The notes: generated from the sequence alone by a model not told the origin. 64,000 nt of DNA from Convolutriloba macropyga (GCF_964194025.1 NC_134480.1:8866001-8930000), one strand, 5' to 3'; counted from the first letter of the stretch, positions 3,001 through 42,800 are shown. Translations and numbers: made by a program.

Positions 3001-4368
3001 TCAGCAGTATATAACAGAAGACGTCATTCTTGCAAGAAATCGGCTGCTCAAAATGTCGCAGCAAAATTTCTTCTCAACAATCCAAGCCCTGAAATGTGGT
3101 TCCAGGATACTTTCAAAGAGCAAAATCCGTTCGCTCAACCCAATATTGGACAACAATGAAATGCTTCGGTCATGCGGAAGATTGCAATTTGCGCCAAATA
3201 ACCTCGAAGTCGAGAAATTTCCGATTATACTTCACGCAAGAGACAAGATAGCAAGACTCTATATAGAGCATGCACACAACATTTGCGTTCACCAAGAAAC
3301 AGAGCCAGTGAAAGCTTTTGTGCAGCAAGGATACCACATCATTGGCCTCAGGAAAACACTTTTGAGTATAAAGTACCGATGTTTTCTCTGCAGACGATTT
3401 GCCGCTCAAAACATTCAACCTGTCATGGCTCCCCTTCCTGCCGTTTTCCGATAGACTCTACTCAGTATCCTTTCGCGAACAGCGGAATCGACTTTTTTGG
3501 ACCCTTTTATATAGAAGATGCCAAAGGACAGATTGAGAAACAATACGGCCTCATCTTCACCTGCCTGGTTACTAGGTGTGTCCATCTAGAAGCTTGTCCC
3601 GATCTCAACACTGACACTTTTCTAAACGCTTATCGACGTTTTGTAAGCTGCAGATGTCAGCCAACAACAATGCTCAGTGACAATGGCAAGACATTTATTG
3701 GTGCATCTGAGGAACTAAAAAGATCTGTGAAACGTCTCGACAACGACAAAATCTACAAAGCAATGGCAGCAACGAACACAACCTGGAAGTTCAATCCTCC
3801 CTATGGACCTCATTTTGGCGGTATTTGGTAGCGCTTGATCCAGACCGCGAAACGCACTCTATTGATCATTCTAGGCTCCAGAAGATTGTCGCTTGATGTG
3901 TTCAGGACAATTCTGGTCCAGACCGAAGCTATATTGAACTCCAGACCACTAACAATTGTCGCTGACCTTCCGGAAAATGAAATGCCTCTCACGCCAAACC
4001 GTTTTCTGATCAATAGACCGTTCAATTCTCTCCCACCAGGAAAGTTCGTCAGCCAAGAACCCGCCAGTTTCAAGTCTTGGAAGAATGTGCAGCAAATGGT
4101 CAACCATTTCTGGAAACGACTTGTCAAGGAGTATCTTCCGACACTGTTAAAGAGGTCCAAATGGAGCGATAGTGGCCAAACACCACTGAGAGTCAACGAC
4201 ATTGTTTGGATTCTGAAAGATATGACTCCTCGTGGAATTTGGCCCCTTGGACGTGTTCTCGAAGTCTACCGTGGACGAGATGGACAACACCGTGTGGTGA
4301 AGGTGAAAACGGCTTACGGCACGTACGTTTGCCCGGTCTCCGCGCTCGCACGCGTTTTGGCTGATTAG
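1..4368 (+). pseudogene. Disrupted gag-pol polyprotein of the first BEL/Pao element
   Basis: ORFs 99-446, 528-1067, 1086-1388, 1419-2084, 2081-3454, 3283-3831 and 3835-4368 are consecutive pieces of one polyprotein. Confidence 0.9.
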
Positions 4369-4487
4369 CCCGTTTTTTCTTGACTTTTTTCCGAAACGGT
4401 TCTCTAGGCAACTTGAGTTACACCCTCTTTGACGATCTGGTCAACCGTCTGTGATGAGTTAGTTGGCCTCCTCTTTCCCCAGGAGCA

Positions 4488-4727
4488 TGTCGTGCAACAA
4501 TCAAGTCAGAAGTGAAACTCGAAAAAACATTGACTTTGTCCTTATCGCAACCAAAACGAGTTGGTTGTTCCCGCAACTTAAAACTGAAAAAAACTTAACA
4601 AACTTTCTAGAACAATGTAATTGAATCCTTATCTATATTCTCTTACAACGACAAATTCTTACGCTCCGCAGTTTCGCCTCTTGAAACCAAAACTTCAGCA
4701 ATACTGTCACGTGCGGTGCCAGCTACA
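4488..4727 (+). repeat. Putative 3' LTR of the first BEL/Pao element
   Basis: Purine tract AGGAGCA followed by TGT at 4488, 120 nt after the pol stop. Candidate ACA end near 4727. There is no partner LTR in the window to confirm it. Confidence 0.4.
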
Positions 4728-7442
4728 TTCAAAACATTGAAATCTTTGAACGAATTTGCTCATTTGGATCAAAATTTATCCGAAACTCGGCTTATTTTCG
4801 TTATGTTCGCAGGTCATGTTGCTACGGTGTTCATCTTAAATTGCATAGACAAAAATTGAATAACGCTTCAAAGCTTATTAAAAAAACAATTGCCATCACA
4901 ACAGAAAACTGTCATCATAACTCATAATTATACAAGCACGTGCTTCATTGTCATGTTTCATTGACACGTCTGGTTGTTGCTTATAAGCCACAAACATACA
5001 ACGGTTCAAACCCAACTTATTTGCATCGACCTTTAAAAATCGAACGGGAAACGTTGTAGAGCGTGTTTACAATGACAATGTAATTTTTGAAGAAAATGGA
5101 CGAAATCGACACTCTTTCACACTTTTTCAACTCAAGAATTGTTACATTGAAGACGCATCCTTAACATACAGAAGAGGAAACCAGTTAACAAGAACAGAAA
5201 ACTTAGTATTAATTTCAATCCGATAAGTCTAAATGTCAGCATTAACAAAAACATGATTAAAAGAGCTGAAATTTTTATTTTTCAAGCTAGGCTTTTTTGT
5301 GTAGTCTAAGAAAAGTGAAGCCTTCATTGGAATCCTTTTCAATTTCATCAGGCTTTCGGGTCATTTTCAAAGTTCAGACCAATATTTTTTAATAGAAATG
5401 CCTTCGCGCAATGGGTTGATAAGAGACCCGAAAACGATTGTTGGGAACCGCAAGCTGTTCCCGTCTTTTCGTTTTCCAAACCTTCATACAATTCCCTTTT
5501 CACAGACGTCGAAAAATCAATGTTGGGTAACCACTTTTATCTATCTCAATAAGAAAATTTCTTTCAAGAGCATTTGTGAAAAACTGAAACAAAAAGGAAA
5601 TTTAAGAAAGGTAATGAGAGAACAGAAAAAAAATAGAAAATAGCAAAAAAGATAGAATACTATTGGGCTGTGAATATATTTATAGTATTTGAAGCCCTAA
5701 AAACGCAGATTTCCAAAGACAAAACAATTTTTGCTAAGAAAACATCTCCGCCTAAAACAATGATGACCAAACTTTTCAGTGCACCCTATAAAAGATTCGG
5801 TATTCTAAGTTTTTAAACTTCTCCTGCGTTTTTTTTTTCATTTCTTTATCAATATAAATTACTGGTCGATTTATTTAAAATGTCTCAAACGAAATGGACG
5901 GCGGATGTACAGGAAAATTTTCATGATATAATGTGAGAATTCATTCAAATCTTTGAAGATCGAAATTGAAGTTACCGTATTTGTATGCCAGTTAGAGACA
6001 GGAAAAAAACGCAAAGGTTTCGAAGTCGGAATCGAAAAATACATAGAGGAGACCCGGAGCCAAGAAAAACCAGTCTAAATGACAATATTGTTTCGTAGTA
6101 TCGAGTTAAGTAGTGTTGGTCTTATTGAAGATTTTATCGAAAATAATTTTTGGATGTTTTAACTAAGATAACTTTAGATTTTACCCAGTTTTTACATTTT
6201 TTTCAAAAAATTAGCTCTGTTAGTGTCCCGTGCTTTATTGAATAAAGTTTGCTGGAACACTTTTGATATTCACCTCATTAGTTAATTGAATTAGATAGTA
6301 ACTCAGGACTTGTCCTGTTATGTTTATTAATTTTGAGTTAGTTTTTAAGCTTTCATTAGTTTTACAGCGACCTCAGAAAAATTTAAATCAAAATCTGTTC
6401 GTTTGATTACGGAAGTCGGAATCGAAGCTTTTGTTAACACACACGCGTCCTTACATATAGACAACCACTTCAAAGATCAAAAATCTCGCAGTTTTACAAT
6501 CTTGGGTCGTGCGCTATGAAATAGGGCAATTTGGATTGTAAATATTCCATAGCCAAATAAACTATGCACGCCATTTCCTTTCTATTCTTGAGTTTGTGAC
6601 AATTAGTCACATCCAACGTGATCAAAATGATTCGTAACGTCTAACTCTATTAAGACAGCTGACAGCAGTTGTCTTTCGGTTGCTACTATTGCAGATTCTT
6701 GATTAGCAATGATATTTGGTTAGGATGCCGTATTTCTTCAGACTGATTCTACCACACATGAAATGTTGGTCCATACAAACATAGATTTCTGTTTGGCAGA
6801 ATTTAGACTTCAAAACTGAAAAGATTGAAAAACAGAACTACCTATTTTTCATCTCAAATAATTCGCTATCGCAGTAAATGTCAACATCTATTTTCAGCTG
6901 CAGTTTACGTTTACTGATCGAGTCAAGCAGTACCTTCATTTGGAAAAAAAAAGATAGGTCGTTCGGGTTGTAATTGGTTCGAATAAATCTACTTTACAAT
7001 ATTCATTATTTACATAATTTACATCACATTTCTATCACACACAGAGACAACAAACACACACGCATTACTGCATGGCGGATGGAGGAGGAGAATTAAGGCA
7101 CAATAAGATGACAAAATAGTAGCGAGAGAGGCAAGAGGAGGAAATTAAACTAGCAAGTAGAGGTAAAAGGGGGTACTTTTGATGGTAAATCCAGTCTATT
7201 CTGTCTACAGAGAACAAAAGAAACAACAAACTCACTAAGGCAACAAAAAGGTAAAGCGATCGAAGGCCGTGCTAGGCCGTTGCGGGCGTGGGAGGGGGAG
7301 TATATAATTCAGTGTTGTGTTTGTTAGTATGAATTTTCTAGTAATTGTTCTGGTTGGTAAGCAAGGGGCTGGAAATAGGTACCATAAAGAACCTTCACAG
7401 CGGTGAGAAAGTGTGGGAAGGGAAAGGAGGTACGTGAGAGGC

Positions 7443-24086: not shown

Positions 24087-26279
24087 TTCTTATATCTATG
24101 CTGCAATCGATTTATTTCAGCAACATGCTTTACTTCGGAGTGAGAGCAATAGAGCAATTTTCTAGAAGAAAACGCAAAATGGTCAAGCGAAAAATTTGCA
24201 TTAAAAAGACCAACACGTTTACAATAATTGCTATGAACTCCGTTTTTATTTTCTTTACAACTCATTCTCTTTATGTGGCTGGTTATCCAGGGTTTTTCCG
24301 CGCTTGCTTTTTCGTGTTATTATTTTAGTCTATGGACAAATTAAAACAACGAGGTAAAAACAACCACTGGTCGCAAGAAAATAGTACAAAAAATGGTTGC
24401 CGTAAGCTCCGATCAGAGACCTCTTGGGTCTGGTGTGGTCTGATCAGAGACAGCTATGGTCTCACGAAGGTCTGATCAGAGGTCAGTTCGGTCAGGTATG
24501 GTCTGATCCATAACTGAGCATAGTCTGGTGCTAAAATTCCTGCAATTAATATCTTCAGAACCATTTTATTCTCTTTCAAAACTATCCAGTAACCCAATTT
24601 CAAGCCTGAAAATGCTTCACTGGCCCAAGAAGATTGATGAACCGGGAAAACGGTAATTTCCAGAAAAACAATTTTTATGTTGTTTATTTTAATGTTTATG
24701 TTAAAATTCTACTGTCCCTGCCAACAATGCAGAAACCTATTAAAAAACCCTAGAGGTTCCCTGCCCCTGGGGCTAAAAAGCCCAAAAAAGAATACATTTT
24801 TTCAAAAAATTGCGAACATTATTATTTTTAAAGTAATTATATCTTGAAAAAAAAAACTTTTATCAATTTGAAAAAAACGCCAATTCAAGAAAAACAAAAA
24901 AACTCCAAAAATGGCGCAAAAACTTGAAACATTGCACCATTTTGGGCTCAAAACATAAAAATAACATTTGAACCTTGAATTGAGGTCTTGCCAGTAGCTT
25001 CACCACTATGAGCACTTAAAGGACTACTAAAGCCAGCTTTGATCCTCTTATGGAAAAACGATAACAGTTGCACCACTGTGAGCTCGATCACTCCTAAAAG
25101 TGAAAATTTAAGCTTGAAATAAGGTCTTTGCAGCAGCTGCACCACTCAAGAAGTACTAAAGCCAGCTTTGGGCCTCTAATGAAACTTACTGCCCACTAGG
25201 CTTTACCTGTTCATCTCGTTTTGAAAGATCAAAGTCATTGAAAAATGTGTAAATACATCTTCCATAAAAGATAGAGCCCCAATACAATCCAATGCTTGGA
25301 TTGTAAAAACCAAGAGCTCCTCAATATGGCTCCGCTCAATTTACACCTATAAGAATGTTGACAATAAAATTTAAAAATAAAGCAAGAGAAAGCCAATAAC
25401 GACCGCAGCTATCTTTGTGGCCACTAATGTAAAATTCGATAAAACCACTAAAAATATAATCCTTAGCCAAAAAACTCACATATTACTATAAAAATTGAAG
25501 AAGGAACTGCTAAAAACGGCTAAAAAAGAGTCTTAAACGGCAAAATCACAAATAGCTCAAAACGGCACTATAAAGTCTAGTATTTACATCAAGTGGTCAA
25601 AAAGGCTTTTAATTTTGTTTTAAATCAGCCGAATAGTTCTTCGCACGCAAACTTAAGAGTTAAAGCTCAAAAATGCTCTCGATTTGCAACAAAATGCACA
25701 CTGCTTTTCTTGCTCTCTGCGACAGAAAATCAGTACCTTTCTTTCTACTCTTCAATCTTCGTCGGTAATATGACTTTTTTCACACGTTTCGATTCCTGTT
25801 TCAAATACACACCAACAAAACTACCGCTAAAAAAACGTTTCACCGATACTCCTCGGATCATTGAAAAACCGGGAGAATGCCAACAACAACTCCGCTCAGC
25901 TAACGCCGATTTTAATTAAACAATTGCATTTAAAACACCATCAGGAACCAAGGCTAAAACTATTGCTGGAGAAGAATTAATTAATCAAGTTGAATTTAAA
26001 TTTTTCAAGGTCTGGGTCGTAAAAATACATCCCCTTTAGCGTCGCGAACCGGTGTACAAGTCGATAACAAGTTCCGGTGAACAGCACACAGATTTCCTCT
26101 AAGATGACTGCATTAGATTAGGAAATAATGCCAAATAGACCGACAAAAACATGGAAAAACGATAGGAATAAAATAATTTCTAGGGTACACAAAATTTCTA
26201 TAAATCTTTGTTAGCGAGGAACTAAAATTAAAACCCCATAAAGGGAGCGGTGAATAGATAAACGAATAAGAATACGTAC

Positions 26280-26411
26280 AGCTTTGAGATGTAGCTGCTG
26301 ATGAGGAAACTCAGAACAGCCACCATGCAGATGAGGACAAACATACAGAACAGGAACCATCCTGACCTCCAAATGGACTTCGGCTTCCTGACAGATCGCA
26401 ACTTTAAATCC
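26280..26411 (-). CDS. ITM2/BRICHOS-family protein, exon 2 (signal-anchor transmembrane helix)
   Basis: Acceptor ttttag ends at 26412, donor CT|GTACGT at 26279, both phase 2. Basic RSVRKPK is followed by hydrophobic WFLFCMFVLICMVAVLSFLISSYI, indicating type II topology. Confidence 0.85.
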
Positions 26412-26917
26412 CTAAAATTAAGATTGCCATTCATCAGCATCATATTTGTAACTGCCATTTCGAAAATCCTATCCTATTTGTATACAATTGAGTGTTAAAA
26501 TTTAGAACCTCTTATAATAACTGCTTAACTCCTCGCATTACACGGATCACGTACGCGAAATTATCAGAACTCAACATGTACAAAATCAGATCAACTATTC
26601 GCAAATCTGTCCGATCACCATTATTGGAGTGTTTGGAAAAACTTTATTGGGAAAACTATAGCAGGCAATGATGCGCGATATAGTTCAATATTACGCAGAC
26701 CTCCATGTTGCGAACTTTGAAAATGCCAAGTTATGTTCTACAAATCTTTGAGCCATCTGCCACCATAGTTTTCTAATATGTGATTTTGATTGGACAAACC
26801 GCATCCAAAAACAGCGAGTCTCTTGTTCTAGCCCCCCCCCCACGCAATTATTGCCCCCATTACGGTATATTTATACACCACTTAACTGGGTGCACAATAA
26901 AAAAACCAAAAAGTCAC

Positions 26918-27054
26918 CTTGGTTCAACTTCAACAGATTCATCGCACTCGAAAGATGGATTATCAATATGCTCGACCTCATCAGCGGCACCAAAGTTGCC
27001 ATCAAGGTCTTTGGCTTCTTTATACTGAGTAGAAATGAAAATAGGTACAACCAT
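26918..27054 (-). CDS. ITM2/BRICHOS-family protein, first coding exon
   Basis: ATG at 27054, 6 nt after acceptor ccctttcag (ends 27061). MVVPIFISTQYKEAKDLD resembles ITM2B MVKVTFNSALAQKEAKKD. Donor AG|GTGACT at 26917. The five exons sum to 1092 nt (363 aa plus stop). Confidence 0.8.
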
Positions 27055-27343
27055 GTCTATCTGAAAGGGGGAAAATGATACAAAATTCCTCACTAGCTTT
27101 GTTCAGAAAAAAATGTTTAAAAAATTCAAATCATAGAATATGGTGAAACTGGTAAAGAGGGGGTGGGAGGGGGTTTTTCCCATTATAGCCCACCTCCTCC
27201 ATTACGGTATACTAAACAAAACCAATCAAAAACATCGATCGCAGATGGTTGTTATCAATTGCTTTCAATTTAGATTTAAAAAAATTGATCACTTATGGCA
27301 GATTAAGAATTGAAAATGCTTTCGAAGTTGGGAAATTTTCGCG

Positions 27344-30125
27344 AGACAAGATAAAGCGCTTCGCGAGACAAACATATTTGCAATTAGAACACCCGCTGGA
27401 ATCGAATTGTCAGTTTTTGTCAAAGAAATGCTCTCTTAGGGGCAAAGCCATCCAGTCAACGACAAATTCAATGAGATTCGTTTTCTGGTGGATCTGGACA
27501 AGCTTAACCGATCCCCGCGCAATTTCCTGTTGAAAACTGTGCAAAATCGAGTCTTCAACCAAGTGGTATCCCAAAAACGTAAGAGAGAACTACAGACCGC
27601 AGCCTGGTCAACGTAACCGAACACCTCAAGGAGAACAAACTTTTAACTGTGCCGTTTGTCAAAAGGAATGGTTTTTTCGTAACGAAGAAAAGCTATGGAC
27701 AAAATCTCCTGGATGTACGTAATTTTTTGCAGTTTAAAGAATGGAACGTGAGGACGATAATATAACTGTTGAAAAAAAATAAAAAAGCACTTTGTCAGGA
27801 AGCAGACTCGAAATTACAGCACTTATTCGACTATATGGTTAAGCAAACACTCTTTAAGAAAAAAAAATAGATAACCCCACTGAAACCGGTTCCGTCGATT
27901 CATTCCTGGGAGTAGACACCACAACCTACACAAATTTCTTACGCTACTTTTATTGAAGTTACCTGGAGTAAACATTGAAACATCCAAAATTGATGCACAA
28001 AGAAATTGAGCGAATTGTGCTTGATGACGACAAAAAACTAGTCTCATTAGATGTAGAAAGTATATACATAAATGTGCCTTTGCCTTTAACGAAGCGATAG
28101 ATATATTCTAAGGTGCCTCTATTCAAGTGACCACGCTCCAGATATATGAAATATCAACAAAAAACTTCTGTAAAAATTGGTTGGGACGAATGTACTTTTC
28201 AAATGCAACAATAAATGTAACTGCAAATTAGACGGCTTAGCAATGGACGAAATTTTGGTGGCCATATTTCCAAACACTTGGACGAAATCGTTCAGAAATA
28301 GAACGATGGAATAGATTTAAAAGAGGATTGTCAATTCAAAACTTTCTTACGAACGTTTTCGAACTCTGAGTTCATCGCCAGGTTATAAACAATACAAAAA
28401 TCTAAAAAGAAAAGCCAGAAAATAAAATGCAAATCAGTAAAATCAACCATTCAAGGAAATTTAAAACGAACTTTTACATATCTACAATCGTATCTACAAA
28501 CCATTTATATCTGAGTAAAAAAAACATTTTTGACTTGATGTAAGAGATGCATATCGACATGTTTTTTGTTAGAAACCTACATATATTGCTTTAAACTTAC
28601 TTTGGTTTTGTTCAAATTTAAAAATGAAATTTTCGTTTCTTAGCGTGTCTTTCAAGTTGGATTTTTTATCTCAAAACTAAGATTTCAGTGTATATTCTCG
28701 TGTTCGGTATTCTTGTTCGACAAGATAAAGCGCTTCGTGAGACAAACAAATTTGCAATTAGAACACCCGATGGAATCGAATTGTCCGTTTTTGTCAAAGA
28801 AATGCTCTCTTAGGGGCAAAGCCATCCAGTCAACGACAAATTCAATGAGATTCGTTTTCTGGTGGATGTGGAGAAGCTTGTCCGATTCCCGCGCAATTTC
28901 CTGTTGAAAACTGTGCAAAACCGAGTCGTCAACCAAGTGGTATGCCAAAAACGTAAGAGAGAACTACAGACCGCAGCCTGGTCAACGTAACCGAACACCT
29001 CAAGGAGAACAAACTTTTAACTGTGCCGTTTGTCAAAAGGCATGGTTTTTTTCGCAACGAAGAAAAGCTATCGACAAAATCTCCTGGATGTACTTCATTC
29101 TTTGCAGTTTAAAGAATGAAACGTGAGGACGATAATATAACTGTTGAAAAAAAATAAAACGCACTTTGTCAGGAAGCAGACTCGAAATAACAGCACAACT
29201 TGCTCCACTATATGGTTAAGCAAACATTCTTTAAGACAAAAAAAGATACCCCACTGAAACCGGTTCCGTCGATTCATTCCTGGGAGTAGACACCACAACC
29301 TACACAAATTTCTTACGCTACTTTTATTGAAGTTACCTTGAGTAAACGTTGAAACATCCAAAATTGGTGCACAAAGAAATTGAGCGCATTGTGCTTGATG
29401 ACGACAAAAAGATAGTCTCGTTAGATGTAGAAAGTATATACATAATTGTGCCTTTGCCTTTATTGAAGTGATAGATATAGTCTAAGTAGCCACTATTCAA
29501 GTGACCACGCTCCAGATATATGAAATATCAACATAAAACTTTTGTTAAAATTGGTTGAGACGAATGTACTTTTCAAATGCAACAATAATTGTAACTGCAA
29601 ATTAGACGGCTTATCAATGGACAAAATTTTGGTGGCCATATTTGCAAACATTTGGATGAAATCGTTAATGAGTAGACCGATGGAATAGGTTTAAAAGAGG
29701 ATTGCCACATCAAAAGTTTCTTACAAACGTTTTCGAACTCTGAGTTCATCGTCAGGTTATAAACAATACAAAATGCTAAAATAAAAAGCCAGAAAATAAA
29801 ATGCCAATCAGTAAAATCAACCATTCAAGAAAATTTAAAACGAAATTTTACATATCTACAATCGTATCTAAAAAACATTTACATCTGAGTAAAAATACAT
29901 TTTCGACTTGATGTAAGAGATGCATATCAACAAGTTTTTTGTTAAAAAACCGACATATATTGCTTTAAACTTACTTTGGTTTTGTTCAATTGTCAAAGTG
30001 AAATTTTCGTTTCTTAACGTGTCTTTCAAGTTGGAAAAATGAAATTTTCGTTTCTTAACGTGTCTTTCAAGTTGGATTTTTATCTCCAAACTTAGCTTTT
30101 AGTGTCAATTCTCGTGTTTGGTATT
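27344..30125. repeat. Tandem duplication (period 1374 bp) of a plus-strand PLE RT fragment fused to a minus-strand pLTR
   Basis: GACAAGATAAAGCGCTTCG at about 27344 and about 28718. Near-identical ORFs 27436-27624 and 28810-28998. PLE RT echoes (LDVESIYxNVP, DGLAM) on the plus strand. Confidence 0.9.
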
Positions 30126-32677
30126 CGTTGCGCGTGTCAATGGCTGGTTTCAATGTTCTTACATAGAGCAACTCTGGTGTCATTAACTTAGATTGTTGGC
30201 TGCATTGGTCTAATATCTTACACTGGAAAGCTGTTTCATCACCGTTGCAATCTTTTGCATGTACTCCCATCGGTGAGTCCACCCTGGCATGCTCTGCTTG
30301 TTGGTAATATGTCGGCATGTCTGCCCTACAGAGATGGATTTGCACCCATTACAAGTGAGTTCATAAACCACGTGGGATTTGAGATCCTCATCAAAGCTAG
30401 ATTTGAGGCAAGGTAAACAGCTCTTAAGTTTCCGAGTGGTGAAAATCGTCTGTACAGAATGAATTTCTTTCAAATTCTTTAAAAATTCATTAGAGATGTT
30501 GCCTCTGTACTGTAATACAAGTTGTTGTTTCTCAGTATTTTCCTGTTGTTTTACGGCTACACCCGCGTTAGATTTATGTCCTTTTCTTTTTTTTTTCATT
30601 CGCAGCTGCTAATTGTATCCTTGATGATTTTCCCTACGCAATGCCTAGGATATTGACTACGTTCCCAAATTTCTTCATTTTTTGTCAATGACTCATGGAA
30701 CGCTTCGCAATTGCTGGTGGCTCGGAACAGGCGGTGTATTGTTCCCTGTATTATGCTTTTCTTATGTTGTAGGGGTGCACAGCTACGATAGTTCAGAATT
30801 GTTCTAGTATCTGATGGTTTTCGATACAATGTGCAAAAAATGTTCCCCTCCGGTTGTACGTTAATTGAAATTTCCAGAAATGGCAAACTGTTTTTATCAT
30901 CTGTTGTTTCTAATGTAAATTGGAGATTTATTGACCGCATCTAACAGCTCTTTTATGTCGCCTCTAACTGTTCTCACAATATCGTCGACATATCTTAGAA
31001 AAACTTTAGTTTCGGACGAATGGTTAATGTCAGTCTGATCATTTTCACGACAGAATGTGCACATCCATAACTGGTTTTCCATGCTATCATATTCTGTGTT
31101 ACTGATTTGCTGACATTTTGCGTGGAACCATCCATTACAAACTTCACACTCAACACCCCGGGAACGTGCTGTCATACGGTGTTCGCAATTGCGACAAGTG
31201 CTAGATTGTGTGGTGGTTTTACATTTAGGTGTCTGTAATTTTAGTTGTAGCTCCCACGATTTCATCCAAAGGTTTGCCAAAATCACCACCAAGGACGCAC
31301 CCATTGCCAAACCGTCTTTCTGACAGTACCAACTTTCATTGCATTTGAAATGGACGTTGGTGACGGCTAATTCAAACAGACGTTTCATTGTTGTTCTAGG
31401 TATGTCTGCTTTATCGTCCCTATTATGAAGCGATCGCAGGGCACTGTTAACAGCTTCCTTTACGGGAACGTTGGTGTATAAACTTTTTACATCCAATGAT
31501 AGGATTTGTTCGTCTTTTTCAAGGTTTATTTGCTCCAGAGTCTTTCGTGCGTCATTGGTGTTAGTTTTTATGTTTGCTCCTTCAATCTTTTGGAAAAAGG
31601 GTGTTAGAAACTTGTTAAGTTTATGGTAACAACTTCCCGGGATAGAGAGAACAGGTCTCAGAGGGGTTTCTTTTTTGTGTACTTTCGGTAATCGATACAA
31701 CCTTGCCGGTTGCGCACCAGTGGACCTTAAAGCTTCGTAAACCATAACCGGTATCTTTCCTTTTTTTCCTCATCTCCAAAAGTTCTTTGTTTAGTTCTTT
31801 TTCGTTTTTCACTACGATATTATTACAACTCTTTTCAAGTTTTGGAACTGTTCGCCATATAAAAACTCTTTCCAGTTTTTCTTCGTACGTGCTCTTTTTG
31901 ATAACACAAAACCCTACCCCTTGTCAAAAGGAACAGCAATCAGGTCGTTGTCAAGCAGATATTTTTGCACTTTTGCTAATGCTCTATCTAAAGGTGTTTC
32001 TCTGATGTTTTTTGAGTACCATTTTGCTGCCGACTCAATTTCGAACAGTTTTTCACCTCGTACATTGTTCTCACACAGATTTCTTATCAAACTGTCTATG
32101 TCCGCCAAGAAATGCAACTCTTCAACCTTGTCCCTTATTGGATGCTTTGGACCAAAAACGAGCAAGTCCCTGACGAGTCCCGGCAAAATGATATTATTTA
32201 GAACCACTACAGTCTTCTCATTAGATGCTCTTAGCGGCTTGTCTTGCCTTTCAGAAAGTTTGGCAACTTTTCCCTGCAGTCTTCGTTCAGAATTAACTAC
32301 ATGTTGCCAACTGCGTTGCGCAAAACGAAAATTACGGAGGGCAATAGGTGGTTATCTAATTTGTTAAGGAGAATTTTTCGACCAGCAGCTTGCTTTTGGT
32401 CACATTTACGATGCGTGTCAGCTGCTGTGGAAATTTCCGACCTTAGTAATTTTAGTTGAAAACTATGCACCATTTGATCCGAAAAAACATCTGTTTCCGG
32501 AACGCAAAATTTCAAAAAATTCGGTATTATATTGGTGGTAAGGCAATTTTTAAGAAAATTTATTCTGCATCTGCTACTTTCATATTTACACACATTGTTT
32601 TCATAGTCCAAGTATGGCTTCCAACAGTCTCTTTTTAGCAAAATTTTTCTCAACAAACATCTTGGCAGTTTAACCAT
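30067..32677 (-). pseudogene. PLE ORF2: RT with in-frame PHD finger, thumb, GIY-YIG endonuclease (frameshifted)
   Basis: LPKVHK..PLRPV, SLDVKSLYTNVP, GLAMGASL, PHD, RYVDD, LPFLEI, YRKPS, VVYELTCNGCKSISVGQTCRHI, ELLYVRTLKPAID. Split over ORFs 32297-32731, 31914-32207, 30897-31745, 30596-30940, 30210-30599 and 30067-30345. Confidence 0.92.
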
Positions 32678-32731
32678 AGTTGAAGGTTTGTAAAAGACCT
32701 CCGGTGAGCGAACACCAAGAGATGCTATCAC

Positions 32732-33329
32732 TTACCACTGAGAATTCGCTTTTTCTTTGCCTCTCGTTGATTTTTGCTAAGTTTCCTTTTCCCCCTGTTC
32801 TTTTTAAGCAGTTTCCGTAGATTAGATTGATATTTCAACACTAACCCCAGTAATTTAAACTCAATGTCGGGGTCCTAATGTAGTTGGAAGTATCTGCTGA
32901 TGATGTTCGTGTTCTTTTGCTTCCGTCCTGACACCAAATGCTTCGTTGACTGGATCACTAAAATTCCTAACAGCTGTTTTAAAATGTTTTTACCGCCATA
33001 CTTTTGACAGCAAACCATCGCCTTGTTTCTATCCGAATGACGTTGTAAAAAGGCAACCAACTTCTCTACATCACACGGCCTGTTGTCATCTGTTCGTTAG
33101 TGAGGGTGATGGAGTTCTTCAAGGCGTCGTACCAAATCACGAAATCACTGCGGTCTTTCAGTTGACCCTTGTGCCAGACCTTTCTTATGTTGTTTTCGGC
33201 GTTTCTGGAGTTTGGGTTGAACGAAAGACCCGGAATGGCGGTCACCGGCGGGAGTAACAATTTTGGATGTTTGCTGTTTTTAGGTTTTAATGCATGGAAA
33301 AATGAACTTGCCGCCAGAATATGCACCAT
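32732..33329 (-). pseudogene. PLE-associated upstream ORF1 (about 198 codons), SGNH-like pattern with basic tail
   Basis: ATG at 33329. ORFs 33066-33329 and 32875-33060 join across a frameshift and continue past an internal TAG to TAA at 32732. Lies between the 5' pLTR and ORF2. Confidence 0.6.
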
Positions 33330-33437
33330 TCTTCAATCTGTAATTGTTCCATGTTGATCTAGCTGAAATGACATAGAAAACTCAACTTGCCCCTTCCTGG
33401 GCTTTGGCTTGTTAAATTGACAGATTTGATCAAGATT

Positions 33438-33803
33438 TGAAAGAGGATTGTCAATTCAAAACTTTCCTAGGAACGTTATCAAACTCTGAGTTCATTGTCA
33501 GGTTATAAACAATACAAAATGCTAAAATGAAAAGCCAGAAAATAAAATGCAAATCACTAAAATCAATCAGTAAAGTAAATTTAAAAGGAATTTTTACAAA
33601 TCTGCAATCGTATCTACAAAACATTTACATCTGAGTAAAAATACATTTTCGACTTGATGTAGCAGATGCAGATCGACATATTTTTTGCTAAAAAAACCTA
33701 CATATATTGCTTTAAACTTACTTTGGTTTTGGTCAATTGTAAAGTTGAAATTTTCGTTTCTTAACATGTCTTTCAAATTGGATTTTTATCCCCAAACTAA
33801 GCT
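33438..33803 (-). repeat. 5' pseudo-LTR of the PLE (other copies at about 28316-28715 and 29692-30100)
   Basis: Shared strings AAGAGGATTG, CTCTGAGTTCAT, CAGGTTATAAACAATACAAAA and GCTTTAAACTTACTTTGGTTTTG occur in all three copies. Confidence 0.88.
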
Positions 33804-33804
33804 G

Positions 33805-36800
33805 TCATCCGATGGAAGAAAGTTGTATTCCTGAACCAGGTGAAGTGCCAGAATATAGGCAACCAAGAAAACAAAACAATGGGGATCTTGTAAGGTTCTG
33901 CAGTCACTGCAACAAATTACCCAAAACTGAACTCACGTTAGTGGGAAGGAATAAGCGTGATGCTACCTCTACAATTCTAAACTTTCGTAGATATGCCGCA
34001 TTGCAACATTAGAAAAAAATTAGTTCAGGGGACTGTGTATAGGTTTTTCTGTTGCACGACAAATTGTAAATGTTTTGAAAAAGCTTAATGCAAATCAAGA
34101 ATGTTTGAAAAATCAGAAACTTGAAATTCGACTGCATATTGTACACAAAACCATGGAAACACTCGTGGTAGGGAAACGAAAAGCCTCAAACACAAAGAAA
34201 AAGAGATAAACAATTGTCAAAAAATAGTTGAGAACAAAACACCACTTATATTTTGCCTTACAGATGCAGTTAAGTGTGATACAGAAAAAAAACCAGAGAA
34301 GTTATCTTAGTTTAAATTTAATTTTTAAACTAAGATAACTTCTCTGGTTTTTGAAACTCGACTGCATATTTTACACAAAACTATGGAAACACTCGTGGTA
34401 GGGAAACAAAAAGCCTCAAACACAAAGAAAAAAAGATAAGCGATTGTCAAAAAATAGTTGAGAACAAAACACCACTTATATTTTGCATTACAGATGCAGT
34501 TAAGTGTGATACAGAAAAAAAACCAGAGAAGTTATCTTAGTTTAAATTTAATATCTGAATAGTAAAATGAAAACATGCTTGCGTTCGCTTAAGTCGAGTT
34601 TCGACAATAACCTGAAATCTCACTTAGTTTATGAATTTCGTATAGTTCATGTGAATCCACCTATGTCGGCGAAACCTGCCGTCACGTTATCACGAGGGTA
34701 ATTGAAAATCAGGGAAATGACTCACCGGTGGGGCAGCACGTTAGCGACTGCTGTGGTTCGTCAAAGTTGTTAAATGGCGAATCATTGAACTCTGCAGCGA
34801 CATTAGAAAATTGATCTCATCGGAAGCATTGTACATAAAGCAACAAAAACCGAAATTGAACACGCGGGACAAACATCGTGGGCGGTAGATGACGCTCAAT
34901 TATTAGTCTGACATGTTAATTGGCTTGTTCAAAAGGTTTTAACGAACACTATATGCAAACAAGCATAAATCACACAACTGTCAACAAACAAAACCTAAAA
35001 TCTCAGAAAAGAATGAAAATAAACGACATTTTTCGAAAATTGAAAATCTAAGATTTCTGAAAGTTCAAAAAAACGATGTAAACAAGTCATCAATTTCCAG
35101 AACCTAAAACTTTAATTTTGTAATGATTGTTGAGATAGTTACATTTTGGTTTAAACAATCTTTGAGTAAAATTGATATCCTGAAAAGGCTAGTTTTGGCA
35201 AAAACGTTCGTTTTAAATTTGGAATTGGACTATCTGTTCTTCAATTTATTTTAAAATCAAATGGGTTATTATTCTCTAAATCGACAAAACAGTGAGCACC
35301 CACTATGAAAGATGACAGCAGCGTTTTTAAATTTCCCACAACCACTTTCTGTATTTTGAACTTAGAGCAATATGCTATACTCTAGGAGCCTTTTGGAACG
35401 ATTGAAATATAACTATGCTGATTGGATGTCTAGCCTTCCTTCCGTGTACAGCACCACATGTATTATCACTCTTAGTTACAAGTTTGATACCTTGTAAGCC
35501 GTTAGAGGGAAGGAACTTTGCTCAATATGTTGATAATATTGTGTTTACCACAAAGTCAAAAGATAAAGATTTGCTCAAAAAATTTAACGCATTGCAGATT
35601 ACAAAAAACTTACAAATTACATTAGAAAGTCAAGCTGATAACGGCGAACTGGCTCCTCTTGATTTGAACATATGTGAAGGCAAGGAAAAATATTTTCATG
35701 CAAATGATACGATAAGCGTGATGCTACCTCTACAATTCTAAACTTTCGTAGATATGCCGCATTGCAACATAAGACAAAAATTAGTACAAGGGACTGTGTA
35801 TAGGTTTTTCCGTTGCACGACAAATTGTAAATGTTTTGACAAAGCACTTAATGCAAATCAAGAATGTTTGAAAAAACAGAAACTTGAAATTCGACTGCAA
35901 ATTGTACACAAAACTATGGAAACACTCGTGGTAGGGAAACAAAAGGCCTCAAACTTAAAGAAAAATGATAAACAATTGTCAAAAAATATTTGAGAACAAA
36001 ACCCCAATATTATTTTGCATTACAGATGCAACTTAAGTGTGATACCGAAAGAAAAACCACAGAAGTTATCTTGGTTTAAATTTAATTTTCTGAATAGTAA
36101 AATGAAAACTTGCTTGCGTTCGCTTAAGTCGAGTTTCGATAAAAACCTGAAATCGCACTTAGTTTATGAAATTTCTTGTAGTTCATGTGAATCCACCTAT
36201 GTCGGCGAAACCTGCCGTCACGTTATCACGAGGGTAACAGAAAATCAGAGAGATGACTCACCGGTGGGGCAGCACAATAGCGACTGCTGTGGTTCGTCAG
36301 GGTTGTTAATTGGCGAATCATTGAACTCTGCAGCGAAATTAGAAAATTGATCTCATTGGAAGCATTGTACATAAAGCAACGAAAACCGGAATTAAACACG
36401 CGCCACAAATATCGTGGGCGGTAGATTACGCTCAATTATTAGTCTGACATGTGAGTTGGCTTGTTCAAAAGTTTTAAACAAACAATATATGCAAAAAAGA
36501 AAAAATCACACAACTGTCAGAAAACAGTCCCTAAAATCTCAGAAAAGAGGGAAAATAAACGACAATTTTCGAAAATTGAAAATCTAAGATATTTGAAAAT
36601 TCAAAAAAACGACGTCAACATGTGGTCAATTTCCAGAACCTAAAAAACTTAATTTTTGTATTGATTGTTGACATAGTTACATTTTGGTTTAAAATAATCT
36701 TAGAGTAAAATTGATATCCTGAAAAGGCTAGTTTTAGCAAAAACATTCGTTTTAAATTTGGAATTGGACTATGTGTTCTTCAATTCATTTTAAAATCAAA

Positions 36801-39800
36801 TGGGTTATCATTCTTTAAATCAACAAAACAGTGAGCATCCACTATGAAAGATGACGGCAATGTTTTTAAATTTTCCGCGACCACTTACTGTATTTTGAAA
36901 TTAGAGCAATATGCTATGCTCTAGGAGCCACGTGGAACGATTGAAATATAACTAAGCTGATTGGATGTCTAGCCTTCCTTCCGTGTACAGCACCACATGT
37001 ATTATCACTCTTAGTTCAAAAAATTGAGCTGCGTTGTAGTACGAAACTCATCCCCCCAAATATATGTTTTTAGCGTATCTTTTGTCTTTTCGTTCATACT
37101 TGATCGTCTGATCTGCTTAAAGAACATTTTATGTATTGTCTTTAATCAAAGTCAGATACTGATTGGGTTTTCAATAGGAGTTAGACTCTAGTCCAGAATA
37201 AGATGAGTCATCATATCGATCGGGCATAGGATCAATTATTTTGACGAATAGTGCACCTACTTACGATCTTATTTTAATAAAATAGAAATCCAATATGGGG
37301 ATATACAATACGCGAAAATAAATCCAAAAACTGGCTAAAATTTTAAAAGTGATCGTTGGGCATCAAAGTAGGGATAAAATGTGCGTATAAAAGTAACGAA
37401 TTTGAAGACTGACCTACTAATTGTGCTACTGCAATTGTCAACTTAATGCAGAAATATAAAAAGCTACAACTAGAAAAATAGATCACAAGTTTTTCATTCC
37501 TTAACATTTATCAACATACACGAGGCTTTTGAAAACTGCTTAAAAATCTGCCGGAACTGCAACATTAGAAAAGAATTAATACAAGGGACTGTGCATAGGT
37601 TTTTCCGTTGCACGACAAATTCGAAATGCTTTGACAAAGCACTTCATACAAATCAGGAATGTTTGAAAAATCAGAAACTTGAAATTCGACTGCAAATTGC
37701 ACACAAATCTAGGGAAACACTCGTTGTAGGGAAACAGAAGGAATCAAACACCAAGAAAAAAGTTACACCATTTTCAAAAAAACGTTGAGATCAAAACCCC
37801 ACTTTTATATTGCATTACAGATGCAACTTAAGTGTGAGACTGAAAGAAAAGCTACAGAAGTTATCTTGGTTTAATTTTAATTTTCTGACAAGTAAAATGA
37901 AAACTTGCTTGCGTTCGCTTATGTCGAGTTTCAACAAAAACCAGAAATCTCACTTAGTTTATGAAATTTCTTGCAGTTCATGTGAATCCACCTATGTCGG
38001 CGAAACTTGCCGTCACGTTATCACGAGGGAAACAGAAAATCAGAGAAATTGATCACAGGTCGGGCAGCACTTTAGCGACTGCTGTGGTTCGTCAAAGTTG
38101 TTAGTTGGCAAATCTTTGAACTCCGCAGTGGCCTTAGAAAACGGATCTCATTGGAAGCATTGTACATAAGGCAACGAAAACGAAATTAAACACGCGCGAC
38201 AAACATCGTGGGCGGTAGATGACGCTCAATTATTAGTCTGACATGTTAATTGGCTTGTTCAAAAGGTTTTAACGAACACTATATGCAAAAAAGCATAAAT
38301 CACACAACTGTCAATAAACAAAACCTAAAATCTCAGAAAAGAATGAAAATAAACGACATTTTTCGAAAATTGAAAATCTAAGATTTCTGAAAGTTCAAAA
38401 AAACGATGTAAGCAAGTGATCAATTTCCAGAACCCAAAATATTTGATTTTAGTAATGATTATTGACATAGTTACATTTTGGTTTAAAACAATCTTAGAGT
38501 AAAATTGATAACCTGAAAAGCCTAGTTTTAGCAAAAACGTTCGTTTTAAATTTGGAACTAGACTATCTGTTCTTCAATTTATTTTAAAATCAAGTGGGTT
38601 ATCATCCTCTAAATCGACAACACAGTGAGCCCCACTATGAAAGATGACAGCAGCGTTTTTAAATTTCCCGCAACCACTTATTGTATTTTGAACTTAGAGC
38701 AATATGCTATACTCTAGGAGCCACGTGGAACGATTGAAATATAACTAAGCTGATAGGATGTCTAGCCTTCCTCCCGTGTACAGCACACCATATATTATCA
38801 CATTTAGTTCAAAAAATTGAGCTGCGTTGTAGTAGGAAACTCATCTCCCCAAATATATGTTTTAGCCTATCTTTTGTCTTTCCGTTCATACTTGCTTGTC
38901 TGATCTGCTTAAAGAACATTTCATGGATTGTTTTTAATCAAAGTCAGATACTGATTGGGTTGTCAATACGAGTTAGACTCCAGTCTAGAATAATTCGAGT
39001 CATCATATTGATCGGGCATAGGATCAATGATTTTGACGAATAGTGCACCTACTTAAGATCTTATTTTATTAAAATAGAAATCATAAGGGATATACAATAC
39101 GCGAAAATAAATCCAAACATTAGCTCAGATGTTAAAAGTGATCGTTGGGTTTCAAAGTAGGGGTAAAAGATACGTATAAAAGTAAAGAACTTGAAGACTG
39201 ACCTACTAAGTGTGCTACTGCAATTGTCAACTTAATACAGAAATATGAAAAGCTACAAATAGAAAAATAGATCACAAGTTTTTCATTCATTAACATTTAT
39301 CAACATACACGAGGCTTTTGAAACTGTCTAAAAATCTGCCGGATCTGCAACATTAGAAAAGAACTAATACAAGGGACTGTGCATAGGTTTTTCCTTTGCA
39401 CGACAAATTCGAAATGCTTTGACAAAGCACTTCATACAAATCAGGAATGTTTGAAAAATCAGAAACTTGAAATTCGACTGCAAATTGTACACAAATCTAT
39501 GGAAGCACTCGTTGTAGGGAAACAGAAAGTCTCAAACCCCAAGAAAAAAGTTACATCATTGTCAAAAAAACGTTGAGAACAGAACCCCACTTTTATATTG
39601 CATTACAGATGCAACTTAAGTGTGAGACTGAAAGAAAAACTACAGAAGTTTACTTGGTTTAAACTTAATTTTCTGACTAGTAAAATGAAAACTTGCTTGC
39701 GTTCGTTTAAGTCGAGTTTGGATAAAAACCTGAAATGGCACTTAGTTTATGAAATTTCTTGTAGTTCAAGTGAACCCACTTATGTCGGCGAAAATTGCCG

Positions 39801-42800
39801 TCACGTTATCACGAGGGTAACAGAAAATCAGAGAAATGATTCACCGGTCGGGCAGCACGTTAGCGACTGCTGTGGGTCGTCAAAGTTGTTGTTTGGCGAA
39901 TCATTGAAGTCTGCAGCGACATTAGAAAATTGATCGCATTGGAAGCATTGTACATAAGGCAACGAAAACCGAAATTAAACACGCGCGACAAATATCGTGG
40001 GCGGTAGATGACGCTCAATTATTAGTCTGACATGTGAGTTGGCTTGTTCAAAAGTTTTTAACAAACAATATATGCAAAAAAAAGTCACACAACTGTCAGA
40101 AATTAAAACCTAAAATCTCAGAAAAGAAGGCAAATAAACGACAATTTTCGAAAATTGAAAATCTAAGATTTTTTGGAAGTTCAAAAAACTATGTAAACAA
40201 GTGATCAATTTCCAGAACCCATAATATTTAATTTTTGTAGTGGTTGTTGACATAGTTACATCTTGTTTTAAAACAATCTTAGAGTAAAATTGATAACCTG
40301 AAAAGGCTAGTTTTAGCAAAAACGTTCGTTTTAAATTTGGAATTGGACAATCTGTTCTTCAATTTATTTTAAAATCAAATGGGTTATCATCCTCTAAATC
40401 GACAAAACAGTGAGCCCCACTATGAAAGATGACACCAGCTTTTTTAAATTTCCCGCAACCACTTATTGTATTTTGAACTTAGAGCAATATGCTATACTCT
40501 AGGAGCCACGTGGAACGATTGAAATATAACTAAGCTGATTGGATGTCTAGCATTCCTTCCGTGTACAGCACCACATGTATTATCACTCTTAGTTCAAAAA
40601 ATTGAGCTGTGTTGTAGTACCAAACTCATCTCCCCAAATATATGTTTTAGCGTATCTTTTGTCTTTTTGTTCAAACTTGATTGTCTGATCTGCTTAAAGA
40701 ACATTTCATGGATTGTCTTTAATCAAAGTCAGATACTGATTGGGTGTTCAATACGAGTTAGACTCCAGTCCAGGATAAGGTGAGTCATCATATTGATCGG
40801 GCATAGGATCAATGATTTTGACGAATAGTGCACCTACTTAAGATCTTATTTTATTAAAATAGAAATCATAAGGGATATACAATACGCGAAAATAAATCCA
40901 AACATTAGCTCAGATGTTAAAAGTGATCGTTGGGTTTCAAAGTAGGGGTAAAAGATACGTATAAAAGTAAAGAACTTGAAGACTGACCTACTAAGTGTGC
41001 TACTGCAATTGTCAACTTAATACAGAAATATGAAAAGCTACAAATAGAAAAATAGATCACAAGTTTTTCATTCATTAACATTTATCAACATACACGAGGC
41101 TTTTGAAACTGTCTAAAAATCTGCCGGATCTGCAACATTAGAAAAGAACTAATACAAGGGACTGTGCATAGGTTTTTCCTTTGCACGACAAATTCGAAAT
41201 GCTTTGACAAAGCACTTCATACAAATCAGGAATGTTTGAAAAATCAGAAACTTGAAATTCGACTGCAAATTGTACACAAATCTATGGAAGCACTCGTTGT
41301 AGGGAAACAGAAAGTCTCAAACCCCAAGAAAAAAGTTACATCATTGTCAAAAAAACGTTGAGAACAGAACCCCACTTTTATATTGCATTACAGATGCAAC
41401 TTAAGTGTGAGACTGAAAGAAAAACTACAGAAGTTTACTTGGTTTAAACTTAATTTTCTGACTAGTGAAATGAAAACTTGCTTGCGTTCGTTTAAGTCGA
41501 GTTTGGATAAAAAACTGAAATGGCACTTAGTTTATGAAATTTCTTGTAGTTCAACTGAACCCACTTATGTCGGCGAAAATTGCCGTCACGTTATCACGAG
41601 GGTAACAGAAAATCAGAGAAATGATTCACCGGTCGGGCAGCACGTTAGCGACTGCTGTGGGTCGTCAAAGTTGTTGTTTGGCGAATCATTGAAGTCTGCA
41701 GCGACATTAGAAAATTGATCGCATTGGAAGCATTGTACATAAGGCAACGAAAACCGAAATTAAACACGCGCGACAAATATCGTGGGCGGTAGATGACGCT
41801 CAATTATTAGTCTGACATGTGAGTTGGCTTGTTCAAAAGTTTTTAACAAACAATATATGCAAAAAAAAGTCACACAACTGTCAGAAATTAAAACCTAAAA
41901 TCTCAGAAAAGAAGGCAAATAAACGACAATTTTCGAAAATTGAAAATCTAAGATTTTTTGGAAGTTCAAAAAACTATGTAAACAAGTGATCAATTTCCAG
42001 AACCCATAATATTTAATTTTTGTAGTGGTTGTTGACATAGTTACATCTTGTTTTAAAACAATCTTAGAGTAAAATTGATAACCTGAAAAGGCTAGTTTTA
42101 GCAAAAACGTTCGTTTTAAATTTGGAATTGGACAATCTGTTCTTCAATTTATTTTAAAATCAAATGGGTTATCATCCTCTAAATCGACAAAACAGTGAGC
42201 CCCACTATGAAAGATGACACCAGCTTTTTTAAATTTCCCGCAACCACTTATTGTATTTTGAACTTAGAGCAATATGCTATACTCTAGGAGCCACGTGGAA
42301 CGATTGAAATATAACTAAGCTGATTGGATGTCTAGCATTCCTTCCGTGTACAGCACCACATGTATTATCACTCTTAGTTCAAAAAATTGAGTTGCGTTGT
42401 AGTACCAAACTCATCTCCCCAAATATATGTTTTAGCGTATCTTTTGTCTTTTTGTTCAAACTTGATTGTCTGATCTGCTTAAAGAACATTTCATGGATTG
42501 TCTTTAATCAAAGTCAGATACTGATTGGGTGTTCAATACGAGTTAGACTCCAGTCCAGGATAAGGTGAGTCATCATATTGATCGGGCATAGGATCAATGA
42601 TTTTGACGAATAGTGCACCTACTTAAGATCTTTTTTTAATAAAATAGAAATCATAAGGGATATACAATACGCGAAAATAAATCCAAACATTGGCTCAGAT
42701 TTTAAAAGTGATCGTTGGGTTTCAAAGTAAGGGTAAAAGGTACGTATAAAAGTAACGAACTTGAAGACTGACCTACTATGTGTGCTACTGCAATTGTCAA

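Follow-up and report, generated by a model that had tools for sequence, protein, structure and literature searches.

A PHD finger within the reverse transcriptase palm of a Penelope-like element lineage in Convolutriloba macropyga

The element in the window

We analysed a stretch of 64,000 nucleotides from Convolutriloba macropyga (GCF_964194025.1 NC_134480.1:8866001-8930000), here called the window, which contains a whole but decayed copy of a Penelope-like element (PLE). The element carries a PHD zinc finger within its reverse transcriptase (RT), between the catalytic motifs B and C. In the open reading frame (ORF) at 30897-31745 on the minus strand, the motif B segment GLAMGAS...LANLWM is followed after approximately 88 aa by RYVDD of motif C, in one frame and without stops between the motifs. 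The insert between them is roughly 78 aa long, and inside it the pattern C-x2-C-x12-C-x2-C-x4-H-x2-C-x17-C-x2-C (CRNC, CEVC, CTFC; 31050-31196), with a tryptophan two residues before the histidine, makes up a complete C4HC3 PHD. The Pfam PHD profile (PF00628, curated cut-off 24 bits) matches the ORF with 24.4 bits and the excised 75 aa with 28.7 bits (E 1.4e-6), while the RVT_1 match reaches only position 145 of the 205 in that profile and ends at the insert. An earlier examination of this DNA from its sequence alone (the sequence-only reading) had proposed a complete, in-frame C4HC3 finger at this place; both the ORF and the Pfam match bear this out, although the first ligand spacer is x12 and not x11.

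Aligned by blastn, the copy and an intact relative from another place in the genome (L032, positions 1427-5529) share 89% DNA identity. Its parts, from upstream to downstream in the element, are the following.

29687..33807, minus strand: decayed PHD-bearing Penelope-like element, whole copy of ~4.1 kb (blastn and tblastn against the intact relative)
33437..33807, minus strand: upstream terminal direct repeat resembling a pseudo-long terminal repeat (pLTR) (direct repeat families D1/D7; also matched by L032 5156-5526)
32732..33329, minus strand: remnant of the upstream ORF1 (ORF 33066-33329 on the minus strand starts like the 202-aa ORF1 at L032 1904-2512)
32303..32731, minus strand: N-terminal region of the RT/endonuclease (EN) polyprotein, residues 1-143 of the intact ORF (tblastn, 84% identity)
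30897..31745, minus strand: open fragment of 282 aa with RT fingers/palm and the PHD insert (ORF; RVT_1 at residues 22-172, PHD at residues 184-232)
31293..31313, minus strand: RT motif B core GLAMGAS, residues 145-151 (translation and alignment to 104 PLE RTs)
31197..31241, minus strand: N-terminal linker of the insert, variable (alignment; nonsynonymous to synonymous rate ratio, dN/dS, 0.38-0.71 where measurable; predicted local distance difference test, pLDDT, dips to 65)
31050..31196, minus strand: PHD finger core, C4HC3, with 8/8 ligands intact in the window copy (Pfam PF00628, alignment, fold)
31005..31049, minus strand: C-terminal linker of the insert (alignment; dN/dS 0.77-1.18 where measurable)
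30981..30995, minus strand: RT motif C RYVDD, residues 251-255 (translation and alignment)
30581..30928, minus strand: RT motifs D-E and thumb / HTH_animal region, in a different frame (tblastn to residues 606-721, 81% identity)
30094..30608, minus strand: linker and remnant of the C-terminal GIY-YIG endonuclease with CC of the CCHH motif, in two frames (tblastn to residues 713-885)
29687..30025, minus strand: downstream pLTR-like terminal direct repeat (direct repeat families; comparison with L032)

The direct repeats that bound the element are approximately 375 nt long, and a third copy lies at 28313-28712. The window copy covers all of residues 1-885 of the 885-aa ORF of the intact relative, in five frame-shifted pieces (tblastn). 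It has in-frame stops at 31916, 31814, 31811, 31793 and 31772, and the frame changes near 32303-32330, 30930, 30600 and 30297. This copy of the element is dead.

The intact relative encodes a 202-aa ORF1 protein with a basic tail and the 885-aa RT/EN ORF. The latter contains PFDKG (the DKG motif) and, at residues 791-868, a GIY-YIG domain (PF01541, 28.6 bits). The endonuclease has two cysteines between GIY and YIG and the CCHH arrangement (VVYELTCNGCKSIYVGQT...H), which is frame-shifted in the window. Between RT and EN there is no CX2-5CxxC finger, with a single cysteine within the 70 residues upstream of GIY in both the 885-aa ORF and the 869-aa ORF of another subfamily. The missing linker finger separates Penelope/Poseidon from Neptune and Nematis (PMC8557442). 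Because of PFDKG, the two GIY-YIG cysteines, the missing linker finger and the repeat structure (criteria of PMC8557442), we place the element with the Penelope/Poseidon type; on these sequence features it is a PLE of that type, with an ORF1, an RT with C-terminal GIY-YIG endonuclease, and pLTR-like flanking repeats. We found 633 homologues at E<=0.001, and those among the matches listed carry RVT_1, HTH_animal and often GIY-YIG. The sequence-only reading had assigned a GIY-YIG endonuclease to the element and named the three profiles to be run; PHD and RVT_1 match in the window ORF, and PF01541 matches at the C-terminus of the intact relative.

Hammerhead ribozymes are common in the pLTRs of PLEs. 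We obtained no Rfam match to a hammerhead in window positions 26000-37000 (E<=0.1) or in the intact copies L031 and L032 (E<=1); minimal variants could escape such a search.

The finger as a conserved part of the polymerase

To place the insert, we used an alignment of 105 PLE RTs, of which 86 are canonical and 19 have a PHD or a PHD remnant. In the canonical RTs the G-to-Y distance, measured between the first G of GLAMG and the Y of YxDD, is 33 residues, which leaves approximately 15 aa between LANxW and RY[MV]DD. The same distance is 95-121 residues in the PHD-bearing relatives, where the extra residues form a single block after the motif-B helix. A short spacing in typical PLEs had been stated in the sequence-only reading, and about 15 aa is indeed what is seen in some 80 canonical PLE RTs.

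AlphaFold2 (AF2), given the PLE RT alignment, modelled residues 330-720 of the intact protein with a mean pLDDT of 91 and a predicted template modelling score of 0.84; the model structurally matches the group II intron RT, the telomerase reverse transcriptase and retron RTs. Both the helix of motif B (151-162) and the hairpin of motif C (249-261) are intact and in place in the model. The PHD itself is modelled at pLDDT 89-93, with dips to 65 and 72 in the bordering linkers. The loop between motifs B and C lies on what we take to be the outer face of the RT palm. The finger is predicted to be a separately folded module with a cross-braced two-zinc fold beside an intact palm.

The insert is not peculiar to the window copy. 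In the 1.18 Gb genome the window ORF has at least 141 matches (138 scored candidates of 4484 at first look), all of which are PLE copies, and the full-length matches align straight through the finger. When a canonical PLE is the query, its alignment to nearly every scored genome copy is interrupted at the B-C junction. The finger occurs in at least three subfamilies, whose identity to the window protein is approximately 89%, 62% and 52%. An accident confined to one copy is thereby ruled out, and the copy count advised in the sequence-only reading shows the insert to be a feature of the family, present in every scored genome copy. The PHD-bearing clade was also identified in other European Nucleotide Archive (ENA) assemblies and in one Tara Oceans contig. 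The only named host outside the window's genome is the acoel Symsagittifera roscoffensis, a different species, as the window's genome reaches a best identity of 57% to that subfamily. A feature search of the ESM Atlas gave weak, generic RT clusters only.

PLEs are known to retain introns (PMC8557442), and an insert of this kind might be an intron, or an artefact of assembly or annotation, that stands outside the protein. However, the intact copies examined, of which some twelve were fetched and others listed as having full-length open frames, read through the insert in frame without a stop. It matches a Pfam domain with a confident predicted fold, it is under purifying selection at the protein level, and it recurs in independent assemblies and in a marine metagenome. 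We regard an origin as intron or artefact as extremely improbable.

We aligned the inserts of 17 relatives; members from outside the subfamily of the window copy have only 21-38% identity to the reference. At least seven of the eight ligands, along with the two tryptophans, are conserved at 90% or more. The invariant positions are C19, C22, C35, C38, C46, C64, W41 and W62, and H43 and C67 stand at or close to that level; the linkers vary in both length and sequence. Usable dN/dS across all partitions was available for two pairs only, as synonymous sites are saturated in most pairs from distant subfamilies. For L031 and L034 the ratio is 0.13 in the PHD core, 0.06-0.12 in the RT and 0.56-0.99 in the linkers. 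For L002 and L007 the corresponding values are 0.30, 0.30-0.37 and 0.38-1.18. In distant pairs dN in the PHD parallels dN in the C-terminal RT half. These substitution rates show purifying selection on the PHD as strong as that on the RT, with linkers near neutral. The family-wide neutral decay of the ligands that would have spoken against a functional domain is not borne out. Of 27 mostly decayed copies from the window's own subfamily, 16 retain all eight ligands; the others show ordinary decay after insertion.

In a maximum-likelihood tree calculated without the insert columns, the 19 rows that have a finger, intact or decayed, all group together with 100/100 support, apart from the 86 canonical rows. 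Because all PHD-bearing rows form one clade, a single old acquisition fits best, and the PHD was apparently acquired once by this lineage. No secondary loss of the PHD was seen in the tree of the clade, in which branch lengths reach approximately 1 change per site.

One subfamily has intact ORFs of 869 aa. The 11 copies fetched are 99.2-99.6% identical across approximately 3.9 kb, have unrelated flanks, and share a common 3' end with variable 5' ends. Upstream of such copies lie 5'-truncated partial copies of the 3' part, and the target-site duplications (TSDs) are variable, at approximately 7-15 bp. Together these features of the copies show that one PHD-bearing subfamily transposed very recently. 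As it bears the signs of recent transposition, an RT with a finger in its palm is competent, and reverse transcription proceeds with the finger present. Confidence is high in the anatomy, the conservation and the activity described in this section.

Several further features of these elements and of their surroundings were observed. The 869-aa family has a basic-tailed upstream ORF in frame with the RT ORF and separated from it by a single TGA in approximately 20 scored copies (L031, oriented, ~1350-1505). In the 885-aa family, ORF1 (L032 1904-2512) overlaps the RT ORF by 4 nt in a different frame. From this arrangement, the junctions could involve readthrough in the former and frameshifting in the latter. 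Directly upstream of the intact 885-aa copy is a 467-aa ORF for a non-LTR, LINE-like RT (L032 34-1437), which suggests insertion into another retroelement. In the window, tandem arrays of partial, more distant PLE families flank the element on both sides (27344-29664 and 33951-41801, plus strand), so the region is a nest of PLEs. These arrays have 25-63% protein identity to the 885-aa ORF piecewise and periods of 1374 nt and approximately 1.5-1.8 kb. A near-perfect hairpin of approximately 90 nt at 34274-34367 has weak microRNA-like Rfam matches below the gathering scores, the only ones that the hammerhead search gave; it sits in a 209-nt repeat found at 34121-34329, 34351-34559 and 35884-36092.

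Type of finger and candidate ligands

A profile of the 17 inserts has its best matches in the PHD fingers of Pygo1 and Pygo2 (E 2e-11 to 3e-10). The next matches are MLL1 PHD3 (1e-7), then Alfin-like proteins, BPTF, TAF3 and other histone-tail readers, mostly of methylated lysine 4 of histone H3 (H3K4me). The core of the AF2 insert model (pLDDT 87-93) superposes on solved PHD fingers at a root-mean-square deviation (rmsd) of 1.2-2.0 A; for the Pygo PHD the value is 1.2 A over 55-57 residues, with a template modelling (TM) score of 0.8. Precomputed Pfam labels on relatives also read PHD_Pygo.

In human Pygo1, the substitutions V350E and A356E strongly lower H3K4me binding and W366E abolishes it (PMC2726290). 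The equivalents of these positions in the 17 inserts are V in at least 90% for V350, G, S, A or T in all 17 for A356, and W in all 17 for W366. Other pocket positions are looser, with V, I, F or A at I357 and Y, I, L, F or A at Y379. The inserts thus keep the residues that make up the floor and the divider of the K4 pocket in Pygo.

We propose that the lineage took up, apparently once, a Pygopus-like PHD zinc finger. This module of approximately 50 aa, with its two variable linkers, occupies the surface loop of the palm that joins the helix of motif B to the beta-hairpin of motif C. There it would dock the RT/EN particle to a substrate during target-primed reverse transcription. The first-choice ligand would be the histone H3 N-terminal tail in target chromatin, with nucleic acid as the main alternative. 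Docking of the PHD segment (83 aa, two Zn) against residues 2-40 of the genome's own H3 gave a score of 0.32, where the mark is 0.34 and the controls gave 0.00-0.02; this speaks neither for nor against binding. We consider the docking-module explanation as a whole, including the step of docking to H3, to fall a little short of an even chance, and H3 binding specifically to be somewhat less likely than not.

A number of observations weigh against this explanation. The EVND acidic loop of Pygo, in which D352 contacts K4me2 (PMC2726290), has no acidic counterpart in most inserts; a basic loop, for instance RVTTRSRG, RVTYRGKG or NVTRRGYS, takes the place of this lip (EVNDD). The window's subfamily lacks an equivalent of Y341, the second aromatic wall, and has a serine there; many members have Y or F at loop positions, although none in the window's subfamily does. 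With one exception, the PHD core has a net charge of -1 to +10 and an isoelectric point (pI) of 6.1-9.8, compared with a net charge of -6 in Pygo. A basic loop and core would be a poor match for the H3 tail, itself very basic, and a good one for nucleic acid. In addition, the site tolerates insertions as such, since other PLE lineages have inserts without a domain in this loop. The exception in charge is P0018, whose residues 334-419 have the sole acidic, Pygo-like loop between the second and third cysteines (C2-C3) and a net charge of -6; to judge from this loop, its lineage may be closest to the captured ancestor. Because the floor and divider of the pocket are kept while the acidic lip and the Y341 wall are changed and the core is basic, an H3-tail reader is a reasonable but insecure model, and DNA or RNA would be just as plausible a ligand for a basic finger beside the polymerase.

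The finger might be a nucleic-acid-binding module that grips target DNA or template RNA beside the palm during target-primed reverse transcription, replacing the N-terminal DNA-binding fingers of other non-LTR elements. The location of the finger within the polymerase itself is consistent with this, as are the loss of the acidic histone-binding lip, a net charge of up to +10 with a pI of up to 9.8, and the conserved basic C2-C3 loop with V-T-x-R-G. However, by both sequence and fold, almost all of the closest solved relatives read histone tails, mostly H3K4me, and the residues of the pocket floor and divider are conserved. Moreover, the window's subfamily is near neutral (net -1 to +1) and P0018 is acidic. 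We think a nucleic-acid module rather unlikely.

Docking to a protein other than H3 would give the finger a role in assembly, nuclear import or recruitment, and not in target choice; the partner might be a host factor, the ORF1 protein or a second RT/EN. PHD fingers, including that of Pygo, bind non-histone partners through their rear face (PMC2726290), and the flexible linkers of the insert would be compatible with such a contact. However, no result indicates a partner. In the profile alignment the alpha1-beta5 loop, which Pygo uses to bind the HD1 segment of BCL9/Legless, is 3-4 residues shorter in the inserts than in Pygo. We judge this role to be quite unlikely.

The finger could also be a tolerated passenger without a ligand, retained in a permissive loop since its misfolding or deletion would harm the palm. 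In other assemblies, low-complexity inserts of 25-190 aa without a Pfam domain occur at the same B-C loop in other PLE lineages (P0099, P0107, P0109, P0114, P0117 and P0100-P0104), five of which form a clade of their own. Because of these domain-free inserts, the loop counts as generally permissive. A second type of zinc finger had been considered there for P0099, P0104, P0107, P0109, P0114 and P0117 and was dropped, as no Pfam domain was found. Against a passenger, surface positions that are not ligands are conserved as well (V, W, R-G, [IL]S), the PHD has the same dN/dS as the RT whereas the linkers on either side drift freely, and there is no secondary loss in a deep clade. We consider it very unlikely that the finger is a passenger.

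To return to the H3 reader, its most specific form would have the finger steer GIY-YIG-primed reverse transcription to nucleosomes of a given methylation state, after capture from a Pygopus-like gene of the host. We hold this version to be doubtful. If it is true, this would be the first retroelement clade whose reverse transcriptase itself reads chromatin, and it would converge on the role of the chromodomain integrases.

Relation to known systems

Apart from the insert, the PHD lineage resembles canonical Penelope/Poseidon PLEs with an endonuclease. Both have a DKG RT, an HTH_animal thumb region, a C-terminal GIY-YIG endonuclease with two cysteines, pLTR-like repeats, 5'-truncated partial copies upstream and variable TSDs. 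However, canonical elements have GLAMGSPPAP...RYMDD with a G-to-Y distance of 33 residues, whereas the PHD lineage has G[LV]AMGASLAV with one of 95-121 residues that includes the PHD, and a 100/100 branch divides the two.

The Pygopus PHD, which reads H3K4me2/3 and binds HD1 of BCL9, is the best match in sequence and fold, and many members of the lineage share its C-G-x-C start. It differs in having CxxxC at the third and fourth cysteines, where the inserts have CxxC, and in its CxxC end, which is CxC in many inserts.

The chromodomain in the integrases of chromoviruses is a module that tethers a retroelement to chromatin. PHD fingers also occur in the ORF1 proteins of CR1-type LINEs (cited in PMC8557442). 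The present finger is like both in being a reader-type domain on a retroelement protein for which chromatin targeting is proposed or known. However, those domains are terminal appendages, whereas the PHD described here interrupts the palm of the polymerase.

The closest precedent is that of the Chlamys PLEs of Chlamydomonas. In five families a PHD is inserted between RT2a and RT3(A) or within the EN, and other accessory domains within PLE RTs have also been reported (Craig, Yushenova, Rodriguez and Arkhipova 2021, PMC8557442). The author of the sequence-only reading knew of no such architecture, but PHD insertions in PLE RTs had thus already been described. Chlamys and the present lineage share an in-frame PHD in the catalytic polyprotein of a PLE, including within the RT (PMC8557442). 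They differ in the site, which is RT4(B)-RT5(C) in the present lineage and, in Chlamys, either RT2a-RT3(A) or a point of the EN between its H and E residues. In addition, Chlamys elements have an N-terminal EN and are found in green algae, whereas the present lineage has a C-terminal EN and is a deep, monophyletic animal group with thousands of copies. In the literature searched (Repbase and Dfam lay outside its scope), no description was found of a PHD between motifs B and C or of a PHD in animal PLEs with a C-terminal EN. The finger is a real and functional, conserved accessory domain, and it extends the PHD insertions of algal Chlamys elements to animal PLEs with a C-terminal EN and to a new site. 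The presence of PHD insertions in both groups suggests that PLEs recruit this domain repeatedly.

Little is understood of how PLEs choose their targets, and among retroelement enzymes their RT is the nearest relative of telomerase. The present clade is deep, abundant and recently active, and it retains a folded, reader-type domain in the palm. An entire domain can be accommodated in the B-C loop with activity retained, which is useful both for understanding and for engineering reverse transcriptases.

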